Shown: positions 1-5,369 of the stretch, piece after piece
How positions within the stretch are numbered: the first letter of the stretch is position 1
Layout of the letters: the number at the start of each line of letters is the position of its first letter
Sequence record: OQ031493.1
Length of the DNA: 9,690 nucleotides
Reading direction: 5' to 3' (one strand)
Notes under the pieces: model-generated
Told to the model about the DNA's origin: nothing
Seen by the model: only the letters and a program-made list of their open reading frames with translations
The model's database searches: none
Translations under genes and position numbers: made by a program

Positions 1-1244
1 TTAGGCGCTTTAAGGCATAAAACTGACATGCTGATAGAATTATCATTAATGTCATCTTTTACTTTAGTAATAAAGAACTGCTGCGTAGATCCACGTTGAA
101 GCGTTGGATTTCGGTGAAAAGTACAACCCATCCCTTTATAAGGGGCTGCTTCTGCAATTAGCTCTTTAAATAGATCTGCAATGATTTGGTTATATTGAAG
201 TACATTCTCATATACAAATGAGAATGCTTCACGAGTTGTCATGTTAAACTTTGCTTTTAGTTTATTGGTTAGATGATACTTTAATAATTGACAACCTACT
301 CCCCACGGAATATGTAATTCATCATAATCATGCGGATCACTAATAGAAGTGATTACTGCACGTGCCGTAGCGTTGAGACGAGCACCAAACATGTGACGCC
401 GAGCAAGACCAGGCTTTTGAGCAATTCGTGATTTTGCGTAGATCTCGTAGAACTGGCCATATAGTCTTAGTCCTCGCATAGTCCTATTCTGAGCTTTAAT
501 TGGACTAAGTGGTACAGATGATGCATCAATACTAGCGAAGGTTAAGGTAGCATCAATTGCTGCTTCAATTGGTTTATCTAAGTAAGTACCAGATGTGGTT
601 GATTCTGCTACGAAACAGAGTTTAGAAGGAACTGGTAAATATTTAGGGAATAACTTATCTTTATTCTGAGCAACGAATTGAGCGAATTCGGATTTATTAT
701 TAGAGATAATATTTGCATCTAGTAGGAATTGGAAGATCTCATTGAAATTATCAATGAAGTGATTTAATCCTCTTTCAAATCCTCGATGCAGTAGCCTATC
801 TACTTTCCTGCGTGTTTCCTTAGAACCAATAGATTCTACATCGTATCGATAAGAAGTATCAGTTAGATATGCTAAGAAATCGAATTCTTTAGTTACTAGA
901 TATCCGGTTAGCATAATGATTAAACGTGGGTTAATTAGGCTACGTACATGTTTTGGTGTACGAACCCACATTGATGGTTCGATAGGACGGCTAGAAGTAT
1001 TGACAACTGGAGTATTACAAATATCACAGATTACTCCGAGTTTATGTGCGTCTTCGATTGCTCGACAATCACAGCTTACACTACTTTCAATTGCTTCTGA
1101 ATCTTGGAAATGAGAATAGAAATGCCTATCAAATTCTTCTTTCTCATCTGAGTTACTCGTATTGTAATCATTGGCATAAATTCGTTTACCCGTAAATTGA
1201 TCATGAACTTCATTATGATCAACAACTTTGGCATAAAGACCCAT
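1..1244 (-). CDS. rpoC: Non-virion multisubunit RNA polymerase, beta'-like N-terminal subunit (phiKZ gp55-like); 3'-partial, runs off the window
   Basis: Hand translation from the ATG at 1244 (SD AGGAG at 1255-1251) is open for 414 codons to the window edge: MGLYAKVVDHNEVHDQF... It has a Zn-binding pair (CDC...CDIC). RHMFGARLNATARAVIT matches beta' 'GKRVDYSGRSVI' and HRNPTLQRGS matches beta' 'NRAPTLHR'. It ends ...SMSVLCLKAP+AA, where NADFDGD is expected to begin. It lies directly downstream of chimallin, as in phiKZ-like phages. Confidence 0.93.
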   Translation of the reverse strand, partial: MGLYAKVVDHNEVHDQFTGKRIYANDYNTSNSDEKEEFDRHFYSHFQDSEAIESSVSCDCRAIEDAHKLGVICDICNTPVVNTSSRPIEPSMWVRTPKHVRSLINPRLIIMLTGYLVTKEFDFLAYLTDTSYRYDVESIGSKETRRKVDRLLHRGFERGLNHFIDNFNEIFQFLLDANIISNNKSEFAQFVAQNKDKLFPKYLPVPSKLCFVAESTTSGTYLDKPIEAAIDATLTFASIDASSVPLSPIKAQNRTMRGLRLYGQFYEIYAKSRIAQKPGLARRHMFGARLNATARAVITSISDPHDYDELHIPWGVGCQLLKYHLTNKLKAKFNMTTREAFSFVYENVLQYNQIIADLFKELIAEAAPYKGMGCTFHRNPTLQRGSTQQFFITKVKDDINDNSISMSVLCLKAP

Positions 1245-1269
1245 ACCAAACTCCTATTTATCGATTAAC

Positions 1270-1312
1270 AAAAAAAGGAGATATAAGCGGCCCCCGAAGG
1301 AGCCGCTATATC
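1270..1312 (-). terminator. Intrinsic terminator closing the chmA 3' region
   Basis: Minus strand reads GATATA-GCGGCTCC-TTCG-GGGGCCGC-T-TATATC-TCC-TTTTTTT: a GC-rich stem with one G.U pair, a C(UUCG)G tetraloop and a U7 tract. Confidence 0.85.
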
Positions 1313-1638
1313 AGTTTTTACAATGGACCACCAACAGAGCCTGGCCCGATCCTAGCGTCATCTACAAAGCTTAACCTCCGCTCTTCTCTGTAGCATACCG
1401 GCACTAGTATCATTTACCATCCATTGTAGTTTTTGATCACACGTCACCTTTTGAGTAACTCCTTTCGGTTAAGTGATCTATCATCCTCGTGTAGTGATAG
1501 GTCGACCTAGACTAAGTCCACTAGTCGATTACTTCACGGAACCTACTCCTAACCGTTATCACCGAAGTGAACCAGGGTCGCAGTATTAGAATCGGGATGT
1601 TACTTATTTAACATCCCTATCTACCGAGGTATTTCCTA
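1313..1638 (-). ncRNA. Putative structured non-coding RNA or structured 3' UTR of chmA
   Basis: There is no ORF of 60 aa or more. GC is 45% by hand count over 1321-1620, versus about 28% over 3541-3780. At least eight helices are visible, with UUCG and GAAA tetraloops, and their G.U pairs work on the minus strand. No known RNA family was recognised. Confidence 0.6.
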
Positions 1639-3519
1639 TTAGTACCAGGTACCCGGTGCATTATAGGAAGGAGCGCCGTAAGTTTGACCCATGCTGCCAG
1701 CCATACCAACTTGTGCACTACCAGAAACAGCCATGTTACCCATACCGGTGTAACCAGCGAAGCGCTGTTGACCGAAGTTGGTAATTAGGTTTTCCATGGT
1801 TACAGTTACACCAGCGGCTGCTGCTGCGGCATCCATTGCGGTGATGAATTTCGGGTTAAAGGTTAGACGACGAGCACGACCAGTATAGGTAACGTTACCT
1901 AGGTACATCTTGTCGAAGCCTTTACTGTTATTCATACGACGCACAATGTGGTCATTACCTACCTGAGTAGCATACCAGGTCTTCCACTCTTGGTCATTAC
2001 CTTCAGACATGTTCATGGCACCTAGAACGTCAAGATCACGACGGTCGCTTAGTTCGCCATGCTCATCAGTGTAGTGACCGAGGTCTACTTCATGATGGTT
2101 GTCAAAGATAATCGGACCAGCTTCAGCTAGGTTATAGAACTGACGGAAATCAGTGCCGTATAGGTTAGTTAGAGCTTGGAAGATCAGGCTAACTGCACGA
2201 GCTTGGTTTACGCCACCAGCTGCATCTAGGATGACTTGCTCAATAGCTGAGTTGTCGCCCATTGGATCGATATCGATCTGGAATGCAGGGTTCTGGTTAA
2301 CCATCTTGTTCATTAGCATTACGAAGTTGCTGTCGTCTGCCATGAATGCTTCGGTGCGAGTTTCAATCGCTTTACCTAGCTCTGAGTAATAACCAAGTGC
2401 ACCAATATCACGCATCTTACTAGTAGCGATCTTCGGCATTAGAGTACGAGCCCATGCCTGAGATGCAGTTGCACGATACGCGTTACCAAGCGCGAACAGC
2501 CACATTTCTAGAGTCCATGCTTGGATCCAGGACGCCTTACGAACGTCAGTAATAACGATGTAAGGAGTGAACTGCGGAGGTAGAACTGCACCAGGTAGAG
2601 TTACGCCAAACATGCCTTGTTGCTGGCCAGTGGTCGGAGTCCAATGTAGATCTACGAATAGACTAACTTGGTTTAGCTGGCTATCGGTATCATAGAACTC
2701 GTTCTCAGGTACGTTGGTTTTCTTACCACGGCTAGTGGAGATGACCAGGTCAGAACGGATCGGATTACCACAGCTATCTTTAACCGGAATACCATTGTAG
2801 TCTAGATTGCAGGTAAGCTGTTCGTTTTCTGCTTTGATGTGGGTCGCAATAGAGAACGGAGTCTCATTGTTACGACGCGCAATAGCATCTTCACAGATAT
2901 TAACGGATTCAACTAGTAGGTTCTTAACAGCTAGTTCATCTTTGAAGTCGAAGTCAGCATACACTGCACGTGGACCGGCAGATAGTACTTCTAGACCAGG
3001 GATGTTGTAACGGTTCCGTAGGAACTCGCCGATCTTGCTCCAGTATTGAGCAGTGAATACATCACGCGGTAGTACCTTCTCTTCAATGATGTCATCAGTT
3101 AGACCATTGTTGATTTTGTGGGTACGGGGACGGATGCGAGTACCAGGTAGGTTATCGAGTACTAGAGTACGAACGAATGCCTTCATGGAACCATTGATAT
3201 CTTTAGCTAGTTTAACAATGAGTAGACCAGCCATACCCACTTGTTGTGCATCGCGATCGAAACGATGGATATCGAAGTCATCAGGTAGGTCCTGATGGCG
3301 GATTGCTTCTTCTTTTACTTTAGTGAATACTTGTAGGGCATCTGCTGAACGAGCATCAGAGCCATCTAGCCGACCAGAGCGACGCATTAGATGGTTAATG
3401 CCAGTAGTAGACCCAGGCGCGCCAGTAGGACGTTGAGCTTGACGCTGTGCAGTGGGTTGCGGAGCCGGAGCGGTAGCTTGAGTTTGAACGGTGCCGATTT
3501 CGTTTTCGTTAACAGCCAT
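1639..3519 (-). CDS. chmA: Chimallin, major phage nuclear shell protein (phiKZ gp54 / 201phi2-1 gp105 family)
   Basis: 626 aa with a Q/P/A-rich N-terminal arm. Segments closely match recalled chimallin sequence: [87 protein letters not shown]. It has an aromatic C-terminus (TWY), an SD AAGGT upstream, and synteny with the RNAP beta' and DNA polymerase genes. Confidence 0.95.
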
Positions 3520-3591
3520 TTTAAATACCTTTACGATTATGGTTTCTTGATCAAGAAGAACCTAAGTACTTAGTATACTAGATTCAATTTA

Positions 3592-3615
3592 GTAATATAA
3601 ATCTCAAATTTTTTT
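3592..3615 (-). promoter_or_regulatory. phiKZ-type early promoter upstream of chmA
   Basis: Minus strand AAAAAAATTTGAGATTTATATTAC contains an exact TATATTAC, the reported phiKZ early promoter core, about 70 nt upstream of the chmA ATG. Two similar motifs occur at 4238-4262 and 6333-6357. Confidence 0.8.
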
Positions 3616-4277: not shown

Positions 4278-5369
4278 ATGTATAATTTATTTAAGAATGC
4301 TCCGTCACGTAAATTGGGGCAGGTGGTTGATCCTAACATCCATTATATCCGACGAATCTACGCTGAGCAAATTAGGGACGTTAAAAGTTATTATAGACGG
4401 GCACCGAAGTATGTTGAATCTAAAAACATATTAGCACAAATGATTCGACATTTTAACGTAGAGTTACTAAGTGATGATGCTACTTTTATAAAGAACGTGG
4501 ACGATCGTTCACGTGCTATTATTCGTTCATTTGGTATTACATCATCTTTAAATAAAGGTAAGGTTCATGTAGGTGGTGTTACACTTGGTCCTCAAACTGA
4601 AGAAGTTCTAGTATCCACATCAGAGAGCTTTGATCTAAAAGATCTAAATAAAACATGGTATAAACTTTCCCCTGTTACGTATCTGTATCATACACGTACT
4701 GATACTAATTTACCTATCATGAACAATACCACACAGGGTAGAGGCTATGGTGTAACTCTAGTAAATATACCAATGCTTCTTGTGATGTACCGTTACTGGT
4801 ATCGATGGCAAGTTGAGAAGAATCCTGATGAAGTAGAAGACACTTATAGGTTTATAGGATCATTTGTATTGCCAAATATGGTTGACTCTTATTTAGATAT
4901 TTCTTTCTTTAATAGGTTAGCAAGGAATGCTTTAGATATTAAAAATCCAACATTCCCTATACCGCATCCATTTTACATCACTGATATGAATCCACGTATT
5001 GATAAACTATGTACAACTATCAATAGAGAATCCATATTAAAAGGTGTAGACATGGAAGGTTTATCATGGATAACACCAGCTATCGTACAATCTAATTTGT
5101 TCGATATGATGCGGCTCCCACGAGAACCTATTAACAGGAATAATGAATGGGCTTATGTATTGGCTCGCACACCCTTCATTAAGTATCTTGTAGGGCAGCT
5201 TTTAAAGAATACTGGTTATGATCAATCTTCTGTTAACACTGTATTAATTGATCTTATAGAAGCATCTAATGATCAAGCATTTAAGCAACAAGCAAATAGT
5301 GAGTTTGTAAAAGCTCAACAGGCACAAGTTGATTGGATGATAGATGCACTTAAAAGAAAAGAAATGTGA
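4278..5369 (+). CDS. Conserved phiKZ-like hypothetical protein, 363 aa (gp52-like by position; possibly late or virion-associated)
   Basis: This is the only long plus-strand ORF. It has an SD-like GGA 8 nt before the ATG, a TATG (late-promoter-like) at 4237-4240, and ends at a bidirectional hairpin. An inverted gene between the DNA polymerase and chimallin fits my recollection of this core block. No catalytic motif was recognised. Confidence 0.85.
   Translation: MYNLFKNAPSRKLGQVVDPNIHYIRRIYAEQIRDVKSYYRRAPKYVESKNILAQMIRHFNVELLSDDATFIKNVDDRSRAIIRSFGITSSLNKGKVHVGGVTLGPQTEEVLVSTSESFDLKDLNKTWYKLSPVTYLYHTRTDTNLPIMNNTTQGRGYGVTLVNIPMLLVMYRYWYRWQVEKNPDEVEDTYRFIGSFVLPNMVDSYLDISFFNRLARNALDIKNPTFPIPHPFYITDMNPRIDKLCTTINRESILKGVDMEGLSWITPAIVQSNLFDMMRLPREPINRNNEWAYVLARTPFIKYLVGQLLKNTGYDQSSVNTVLIDLIEASNDQAFKQQANSEFVKAQQAQVDWMIDALKRKEM

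Follow-up and report, generated by a model that had tools for sequence, protein, structure and literature searches.

What lies between the chmA gene and the gp55 gene of the phiKZ-like jumbo phages? The chmA gene encodes chimallin (ChmA), the nuclear shell protein, and is the first and most critical gene of the nucleus-forming jumbo phages, of which phiKZ is the model. The next gene, gp55, encodes the N-terminal beta′ subunit of the non-virion RNA polymerase (nvRNAP). I analysed a stretch of 9,690 nucleotides from sequence record OQ031493.1 (hereafter the window), in which the two genes are separated by a spacer at positions 1270-1638. The window was found to come from a phiKZ-like Pseudomonas aeruginosa jumbo phage; the queried stretch is 100% identical to MRostami-2023c and 98.6-98.8% identical to phiKZ, where the spacer corresponds to 47,529-47,897. 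An earlier note, made from the letters of the window, had proposed that the spacer is a large structured RNA read from the minus strand. In summary, the chmA 3′ untranslated region (UTR) holds a modular, multi-domain, conserved sense-strand RNA that ends at a terminator. One of its domains, designated D, represents a new RNA family that is restricted to the chmA 3′ UTRs of Pseudomonas-type chimalliviruses, and the modules are accessory and have been exchanged between phage lineages.

A modular RNA in the chmA 3′ UTR

Is the spacer one RNA or several? The consensus fold of ten phiKZ-like and PA1C-like phages (RNAalifold), the single-sequence minimum free energy (MFE) fold, and the covariance models (R1 for domain D and R2 for domain C) all divide the spacer into three separate domains, A, C, and D, followed by the terminator (Table 1). 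Thus, a large structured minus-strand RNA does lie directly downstream of chmA, but the proposed single RNA of about 370 nt has given way to three separable modules, which occur in phage-dependent combinations. All coordinates and sequences quoted in the earlier note are correct. Its helices 1, 2, 3, 5, and 6 and both helices nested in helix 6 were recovered by RNAalifold and are retained by compensatory changes. Its helix 4 (CUAUCA/UGAUAG) had to be given up: it is mismatched in the PA1C-type phages and competes with the pairing of GUGAAG (1537-1532) and CU-AUCAC (1500-1494), which is formed in all ten phages. Support for the structure is firm for domain D and reasonable for domains A and C, in which the ten-phage alignment has eight compensatory pairs.

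The contrast in GC content reported before was reproduced (44.7% in the UTR against 26.0% in the 311 nt upstream of chmA), and so was the lack of a substantial open reading frame (ORF), the longest ORFs being 23-38 aa. Hand counts of Shine-Dalgarno-like and GGA motifs in the UTR are about as expected from its composition, with no enrichment. The sense strand folds with -122.4 kcal/mol, against -100.6 +/- 5.8 kcal/mol for dinucleotide shuffles (z = -3.8). Since the antisense strand has a nearly equal score (z = -3.5), energy alone cannot choose the strand, and covariation is the stronger evidence for the structure. The frequent G-U pairs in domain D indicate that the structure belongs to the chmA-sense strand.

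Domain A is a four-way junction. Its closing helix P0 has a compensatory U-A to C-G change in four of the ten phages, in the PA1C group (RNAalifold). The same group shows compensatory A-U to U-A and U-A to C-G changes in arm 1 and a U-A to C-G change in arm 3, and W10-2 has an A-U to G-C change in arm 3. Because arm 2 is almost invariant in sequence in the ten phages, covariation is uninformative for it. PhiPA3 has the arms of domain A too, along with large insertions. The PhiPA3 equivalent of arm 1 is GGGGUGUAC/GUACAUCCC, the tip of its arm 2 is CUC-GAAA-GAG, and in its arm 3 GUGGUAGC pairs with GCUAUCAC across a long insertion. The alignment with PhiPA3 was kept out of the counts because MAFFT misplaced the inserted middle part of this phage.

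Domain C is a three-way junction present once in the phiKZ genome (whole-genome R2 scan). PhiPA3 has a domain C (R2 match, E = 4e-12) whose P1 is changed to AACCAC/GUGGUU, and in HPP-Temi an A-U pair of P3 has become G-C. In total, 98.4% of the cells are paired and both sides are changed in 6 of 14 pairs, in a count that includes two weak rows and few independent lineages. Phabio gave a weak R2 match only (E about 0.1-0.9). A descriptor of the three-way junction had 82 matches in 310 kb and is too loose; thus, the C-like junctions seen by eye in 201phi2-1 and Psa21 are statistically insecure.

Does the UTR belong to a known RNA family? At the gathering threshold, none of the 4227 models of Rfam 15 matched the window or 11 related loci; these models cover riboswitches, group I and II introns, hammerhead, twister, pistol, hatchet, hepatitis delta virus (HDV), 6S, signal recognition particle (SRP), RNase P, transfer-messenger RNA (tmRNA), GOLLD, ROOL, and HEARO. 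The matches at E <= 10 are terminator-like or due to chance (12-20 bits against thresholds of 38-55). ARAGORN found no tRNA or tmRNA gene in the window, so that the failure of the first reading to match the element to tRNA, tmRNA, group I introns, or small ribozymes was borne out by both programs. Although chmA has been the subject of intensive study, an RNA at its 3′ UTR is likewise absent from the searchable phiKZ literature, coordinate tables aside, which comprises two transcriptome maps by differential RNA sequencing (dRNA-seq) and ONT-cappable-seq, Grad-seq, antisense oligonucleotide (ASO) work, transposon sequencing (Tn-seq), enhanced crosslinking and immunoprecipitation (eCLIP) of ChmC, and a 2026 review. 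The UTR RNA is real and is undescribed in searchable sources.

Table 1. Features of the chmA-gp55 region; positions refer to the window unless a locus is named.
Feature	Position	Strand	Description
Whole chmA 3′ UTR (domains A, C, D and terminator)	1270..1638	-	369 nt, 44.7% GC, no conserved ORF
Domain A, four-way junction	1485..1629	-	Closing P0: CUCG 1628-1625 with CGAG 1489-1486
Arm 1 of A	1587..1623	-	Extended hairpin UAGA..GGGAUGUUA-AAUAAG-UAACAUCCC..UCUA; contains helix 1 of the earlier note (1594-1617)
Arm 2 of A	1544..1585	-	UACU.CGACC ... UCAC-UUCG-GUGA (1559-1570, helix 2) ... GGUU.G.AGUA; MFE and RNAalifold
Arm 3 of A	1494..1537	-	GUGAAG/CU-AUCAC around UCGAC..UGGAC-UUA-GUCUA..GUCGA (helix 3, 1502-1528); RNAalifold
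Domain C	1435..1478	-	P1 GAUCAC/GUGAUC, junction UUAA, P2 CC-GAAA-GG, P3 GUUACU-CAAAA-GGUGAC; helix 5
Domain D	1319..1428	-	110 nt; helix 6 domain; model R1
P1 of D	1428-1419 with 1328-1319	-	Followed by J1/2 GGUAAAU
P2 of D	1411-1402 with 1357-1348	-	10 bp, then 8/4-nt internal loop
P3 of D	1393-1386 with 1369-1362	-	8 bp; 16-nt loop L3 AAGAGCGGAGGUUAAG (1385-1370)
P4 of D	1345-1330	-	Hairpin GCCAG-GCUCUG-UUGGU
Candidate loop-loop pseudoknot in D	1335..1380	-	L3 CGGAG 1380-1376 with P4 loop CUCUG 1339-1335 (CUCCG in relatives)
Intrinsic terminator	1270..1312	-	GAUAUAGCGGCUCC-UUCG-GGGGCCGCUUAUAUC, then UCC and U7; MFE and RNAalifold stem
chmA (chimallin, nuclear shell protein)	1639..3519	-	626 aa; Pfam PF25677 Chimallin_Phikzvirus, E = 0, full length
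gp55 (nvRNAP beta′ N-terminal subunit)	2..1255, truncated by window edge	-	Ribosome-binding site AGGAG 1255-1251, ATG 1244-1242
Unrelated modules in other phages	L010 4790-4960; L013 4785-4990; L021 4350-4570; L054; L062; L064		

Domain D is a new RNA family

The covariance model R1 finds domain D in chmA 3′ UTRs only, with 14 matches that represent 12 distinct sequences. The carriers are all phiKZ-like phages, the group of PA1C, PS119XW, and HPP-Temi, phiHQ, and three uncultivated phages, namely L028 from a metagenome and L030 (= L070) and L060 from IMG/VR. They span three chimallin lineages with protein identities of 41-48%. The covariation check was strongly positive for this domain. Across the 12 distinct sequences, 96.9% of the cells are standard pairs and both sides are changed in 22 of 40 pairs (21 of 27 in an earlier count with eight rows). 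When the columns were shuffled 500 times, no shuffle reached the observed value on four of five measures, and 41 of 500 did so for further pair types; sliding the partner by one to three columns left 33-57% paired. The phiKZ type and the L028 type have almost entirely different sequences in the stems P1, P2, and P3. The invariant parts are GGUAAA of J1/2, A(A/C)GAGCGGAGG.. of L3, the AYGA strand, and CCAGGCUCYGUUGGUGG; about 45 unpaired bases are identical in all 12 sequences. Covarying stems with conserved junctions make D resemble a riboswitch aptamer. Since a fold proven by covariation carries about 45 invariant unpaired bases, it is almost certain that D has a specific partner.

Could the element simply protect the message? 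As a generic mRNA stabiliser, its stacked helices would block 3′-to-5′ exonucleases and the entry of endonucleases and thereby prolong the life of the chmA mRNA, the most important early message. A densely structured 3′ end on an essential mRNA with very high expression suits this explanation, as does the ASO study, in which the chmA mRNA level was unaffected by a translational block. However, a barrier depends on stable stems and would not require some 45 loop and junction bases to stay invariant through the complete turnover of the stems, and the universal terminator hairpin already blocks the 3′ end in the relatives that lack modules. I regard simple stabilisation as rather unlikely.

Two tertiary or competing pairings proposed in the earlier note did not survive the comparison. 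For the pseudoknot CCGGU/AUCGG, the relatives have CCAGA, UCAGA, or CCUAA; the competing pairing ACAGAG/CUCUGU needs a U that is unique to the window, the other 11 distinct sequences having C. A different loop-loop pseudoknot, between L3 and the P4 loop, is the present candidate. Its two sides are invariant except for the C-to-U change in the window, which preserves a G-U pair. Because of this invariance, it is complementarity only that points to the P4 hairpin and to its contact with L3. The internal loop between P2 and P3 reads YCN-(G/A)(A/U)(G/A)YG opposite AYGA. A kink-turn has a 3-nt bulge and then tandem sheared G.A/A.G pairs, and the loop looks like one in some members only. The PA1C type of this loop fits (CCA-GA.. 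/ ..GA), several members have A at position 1b, and the window has U at 2b; position 3b-3n (pair 35-71) covaries from G-C to A-U.

D is present once in the phiKZ genome (whole-genome R1 scan). A two-block pattern made of the invariant L3 and P4 loop revealed one new phage, L030, in viral contigs. The same pattern gave eight chance matches in genome contigs, in unrelated sequence without the rest of D. The PhiPA3 segment between domain C and the terminator is not D; R1 does not match it, and its fold is different.

Might D have no function as RNA, being either a small protein gene or a DNA element resembling a miniature inverted-repeat transposable element (MITE)? Some GenBank records annotate 'hypothetical proteins' of 31-38 aa in the UTR. 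These ORFs have not been conserved; that of 31 aa in domain D has lost its ATG in most relatives (AAG instead), and the compensatory substitutions in the stems would alter any peptide. As for a MITE, the 9-bp ends of D could be taken for terminal inverted repeats, and in phiKZ-type phages D is flanked by AAAAC on both sides (1433-1429 and 1318-1314, minus strand), which resembles a target-site duplication. However, the flanks are missing around D in PA1C, L028, L030, and L060, the terminal repeats covary rather than keep their sequence, and there is one copy per genome. Both versions of this explanation are very improbable.

Exchange of modules between phage lineages

How did D come to be shared by three chimallin lineages? 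In the BLAST-aligned part, the UTR is 95-100% identical in about 50 phiKZ-like phages and 84-86% identical in the PA1C group. A global comparison of the window with PA1C gives 77% identity for the UTR, against 61% for the adjacent 3′ end of chmA and 56% for the 5′ end of gp55. The D sequence of PA1C is 86-91% identical to the phiKZ-like copies, which are 90-95% identical to each other, and 65-71% identical to the L028 type. Some UTRs are mosaic: W10-2, SL2, T2P, and PA7 have the PA1C-type P2/J region, and HPP-Temi has the phiKZ-type loop of domain C. The high identity of the UTR beside the low identity of its flanks, together with the mosaic variants, indicates that the UTR has been transferred between jumbo phage lineages of P. 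aeruginosa and still recombines. The modules also turn over fast, since D is present in L028, L060, and L070 but not in D6 and Psa21, despite ChmA C-termini that are 85-88% identical. In Noxifer, D6, and at least ten uncultivated phages, the spacer is 76-102 nt in length and consists of the terminator only.

Since these many nucleus-forming relatives do without modules, the role of the modules probably lies outside the core nucleus pathway. This bears on the proposals that the element is a zip-code or export signal for local translation of ChmA or an RNA scaffold for shell nucleation. In their favour, the element is physically linked to chmA in all carriers. In addition, the chmA 5′ UTR has a hairpin, GGUUCUUCUUGAUCAAGAAACC (3541-3562, minus strand), which is conserved across phages with chimallins about 40% identical and has the palindrome UUGAUCAA at its centre. 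The palindrome could form kissing dimers or, in phiKZ- and PA1C-type phages, could pair with UGAUCAA (about 1438-1432, at the 3′ side of domain C). PhiPA3 has lost this match, however, and the eCLIP peaks of ChmC were reported near start codons rather than in 3′ UTRs. A role in the nucleus is quite improbable.

Other modules were seen at the same site. A module of about 150 nt, AAAGGUCUGACG...UGACCUGCCAAAGUC...ACGGUGAUGUAA...AGGUAAACCGUAUUA, is common to phiHQ (L004, about 640-800) and Psa21 (L009, about 4910-5055) with 73% identity; it stands in for domain A in phiHQ and has no Rfam match. A hairpin with the loop CCUAAAUACUGG is found in the chmA 3′ UTRs of 201phi2-1, Viktualia, L021, L062, and L064. 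Among the unrelated modules of the 201phi2-1-like and uncultivated phages, there is a long hairpin with a conserved loop, (G/A)CCUAAAUNCUGG, and GGCAGGGUGCGC...GCCCUGCCCC is common to L016/L055 and L058. The helix GGAUGACGGCUC...GGGAUCAUCC and the terminator-proximal hairpin CCAGUUARNUCUGG are further examples.

Small ORFs of 90-188 aa lie between the chmA terminator region and gp55 in L010 (4984-5550, gp106 of 201phi2-1), L011 (5037-5309), L013 (5018-5350), L021, and L027/L077. Thus, the site is a hotspot for protein-coding cargo as well. The cargo ORFs of 201phi2-1, Phabio, and Viktualia had no informative match in Pfam or PHROG; for gp106, similarity to the phiKZ major capsid protein family stayed below the threshold (E = 3e-5, 22.8 bits, cutoff 27).

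Accessory, diverse, and lineage-variable modules resemble counter-defence cargo, and this brings up the main alternative to a function in cis: an RNA derived from the 3′ UTR that works in trans. The transcript would be processed, e.g. by RNase E at the A-rich linkers, and a 3′ fragment (D with the terminator, or the whole of A, C, D, and terminator) would accumulate early and in high copy number owing to the strongest early promoter of the phage. It may then serve as a decoy or sponge for a conserved host factor, for an immune sensor or effector, or for a small signalling molecule. The mosaic UTRs and their identity of 77-91% between the phiKZ-like and PA1C-like phages, both of which infect P. 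aeruginosa, beside 56-61% for the flanking coding DNA, agree with this explanation, and the 45 or so invariant unpaired bases imply a specific, conserved partner. Moreover, the modules lie between a stop codon and a U-tailed terminator without an early-promoter core of their own, as do known 3′-UTR-derived small RNAs (sRNAs), for which phiKZ PHIKZ298 and PAK_P3 provide precedents. On the other hand, manual inspection of the phiKZ Grad-seq data gave only two noncoding RNA (ncRNA) candidates, neither of them at the chmA 3′ UTR, and ANNOgesic predicted from the dRNA-seq data a single sRNA of 75 nt, which a northern blot did not confirm. A trans-acting RNA is possible, and I would not call it probable.

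The route into gp55 and the role of D

The order of chmA and gp55 is kept at all loci with both ends present (tblastn synteny). The UUCG-loop terminator that had been noticed at the end of the element is present as a predicted stem of about 13 bp (1312-1280) with a UUCG loop and a U-tract (U7, 1276-1270). A simple terminator scanner missed it because the U-run begins 3 nt past the stem. Every relative examined has a C(UUCG)G hairpin and a U-tract after chmA, whether modules are present or not; modules invariably precede the terminator. The distance from the U-tract to the ATG of gp55 is 25 nt in the window and 25-35 nt across all lineages. D adjoins the terminator stem at 6-8 nt in all four of its architectures, A-C-D-T, Y-C-D-T (phiHQ), D-T (L028 and L060), and X-D-T (L030), where T is the terminator. 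The invariant GGCUCC of D is the same hexamer as in the 5′ arm of the terminator.

Is there a promoter for gp55? I take TATATTAC to be the core of the phiKZ early promoters. The window has a single exact copy, at 3592-3599 on the minus strand, 73 nt upstream of chmA and preceded by an A-run; this copy is kept in all relatives, including phages with chimallins only about 40% identical. No exact match to this presumed core was found in the UTR of the window, and no recognisable early promoter was found between the terminator and gp55. Wicke et al. (PMC8244752) placed PHIKZ054 in a multi-gene operon. The lack of an early promoter in between, the operon placement, and the short spacing suggest that the early transcription of gp55 is read-through of the chmA terminator. 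A switch that controls this read-through, as proposed in the earlier note, is plausible from the layout.

I tentatively prefer, as still short of probable, that D provides a specific binding platform and works in cis, on 3′-end formation, on read-through into gp55, or on the stability of the 3′ end. The idea of a platform comes from the position of D, which is 6-8 nt from the terminator, with the essential gp55 close behind and no recognisable early promoter for it. D, perhaps aided by A and C, would bind a protein, a phage RNA polymerase, or a small ligand. In cis, at the 3′ end of the chmA message, it would tune termination against read-through, and it would also affect the stability of the terminated chmA mRNA. 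Its mode would be nearer to antitermination RNAs that bind a polymerase or protein than to a riboswitch with alternative pairing.

Several points weigh against this preference. The close relatives D6 and Psa21 have the same layout of terminator and gp55 without D, so that any cis role would be dispensable, and quite different modules occupy the same site in other phages. An accessory function in trans would account for the horizontal exchange no less well. A middle or late promoter of gp55 for the nvRNAP, whose consensus is loose and poorly defined, is possible inside the UTR. By inspection, no mutually exclusive pairing of D with the terminator is conserved in either of the two D lineages; the best alternative, between the P4 loop region and the 3′ arm of the terminator, is 6 bp against the stem of about 13 bp, and the MFE structure has D and the terminator as independent folds.

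The independent folding likewise tells against a classical riboswitch, in which D would be the aptamer and an alternative pairing would decide whether the terminator forms, thereby controlling gp55. D has some of the looks of one: a three-way junction, a long arm, an asymmetric internal loop possibly bending L3 onto the P4 loop, and conserved junctions, all placed just before a terminator and a gene without an early promoter of its own. However, neither an anti-terminator nor an anti-antiterminator pairing is conserved, D has no match to an Rfam riboswitch, and the close relatives with the same terminator lack D. A classical riboswitch is improbable.

In a broader view, it is possible, at some distance from likely, that D is the core of a hitherto unknown class of phage riboregulators. 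Such an RNA might bind the phage multisubunit RNA polymerase or a small molecule and so set the dosage of the nvRNAP, or might be an abundant early decoy against host defence. The chmA 3′ UTR of Pseudomonas chimalliviruses would be a site of exchangeable RNA cassettes with at least half a dozen unrelated structured families.

ChmA of the window is 100% identical to that of KTN4 and MRostami-2023c and 99.7% identical to phiKZ gp54; gp55 was identified by the RNA polymerase beta subunit annotation in phiKZ and relatives and by tblastn. It has 420 aa in the phiKZ type and 476-489 aa in PA1C, PhiPA3, Psa21, and other orthologues. In phiKZ (NC_004629.1, 47923-50761), gp55 is followed by the HNH endonuclease gp56, a gap of 370 nt, and a 61-aa ORF, gp56.1; this layout looks like an endonuclease-bearing intron that may split gp55, outside the window. 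Just 5′ of the chmA promoter, Psa21 (L009, 2657-2716), D6 (L014, 2664-2721), and L028 (2306-2365) have a long conserved helix, AGACGGGUUCACUUAA...GCUAUUAUAUAGC...CAGACAAACCCGUCU, with the string CACUUAA, which is also that of the domain C junction. Upstream in the window are a divergent family B DNA polymerase (PF20286, 6394-8589, minus strand) and an SH3-fold polymerase-associated protein (PF20287, 8790-9206, minus strand). These correspond to phiKZ gp50 and gp49, and are ordinary context.

The transcript that carries this new RNA family, in effect a set of modules, is central to the biology of a model jumbo phage. The partner of D could reveal a balance between the shell protein and the phage RNA polymerase, a new class of ligand- or polymerase-binding RNA, or an RNA-based counter-defence. 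The variable, horizontally exchanged modules at one site make a ready comparative system with natural presence/absence variants, and their variation is relevant to the engineering of therapeutic phiKZ-like phages.

How does the UTR compare with known systems? Like GOLLD, ROOL, and HEARO, it is a phage-borne, complex, conserved RNA; unlike them, it is much smaller, modular, and tied to the 3′ UTR of one gene, and it has no cmscan match to them at E <= 10. D shares with the purine and lysine riboswitch aptamers a junction closed by P1, an interrupted long arm, complementary distal loops, a conserved junction, and covarying stems. It differs from them in having no Rfam match or identifiable expression platform and in its place in the 3′ UTR, in an accessory, exchanged cassette. 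With the 3′-UTR-derived sRNAs of Gram-negative bacteria and phages (phiKZ 3′UTR_PHIKZ298 and PAK_P3 ncRNA1/2), the chmA UTR has in common the location between stop codon and terminator, the lack of its own promoter, and an abundant mRNA. Those sRNAs are 90-210 nt in length, with one or two hairpins and short seeds, whereas the chmA UTR, known here from its sequence, has three complex domains over about 330 nt and about 45 invariant unpaired bases in D alone.

In HK022 put, lambda nut, and attenuating leaders, a structured nascent RNA lies upstream of a terminator before an essential downstream gene. The chmA UTR is likewise structured just before a terminator and an essential gene. It has no sequence or structure similarity to put or nut, the phiKZ polymerases are divergent multisubunit enzymes of the phage itself, and relatives manage without D. 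The 3′ UTRs of flaviviruses contain exoribonuclease-resistant RNA (xrRNA) and dumbbell modules that give rise to subgenomic flavivirus RNA (sfRNA). Although flaviviruses belong to another domain of life, with other nucleases and unrelated folds, their 3′ UTRs offer a general analogy to that of chmA: an array of independently folding, lineage-variable, and shuffled RNA modules.

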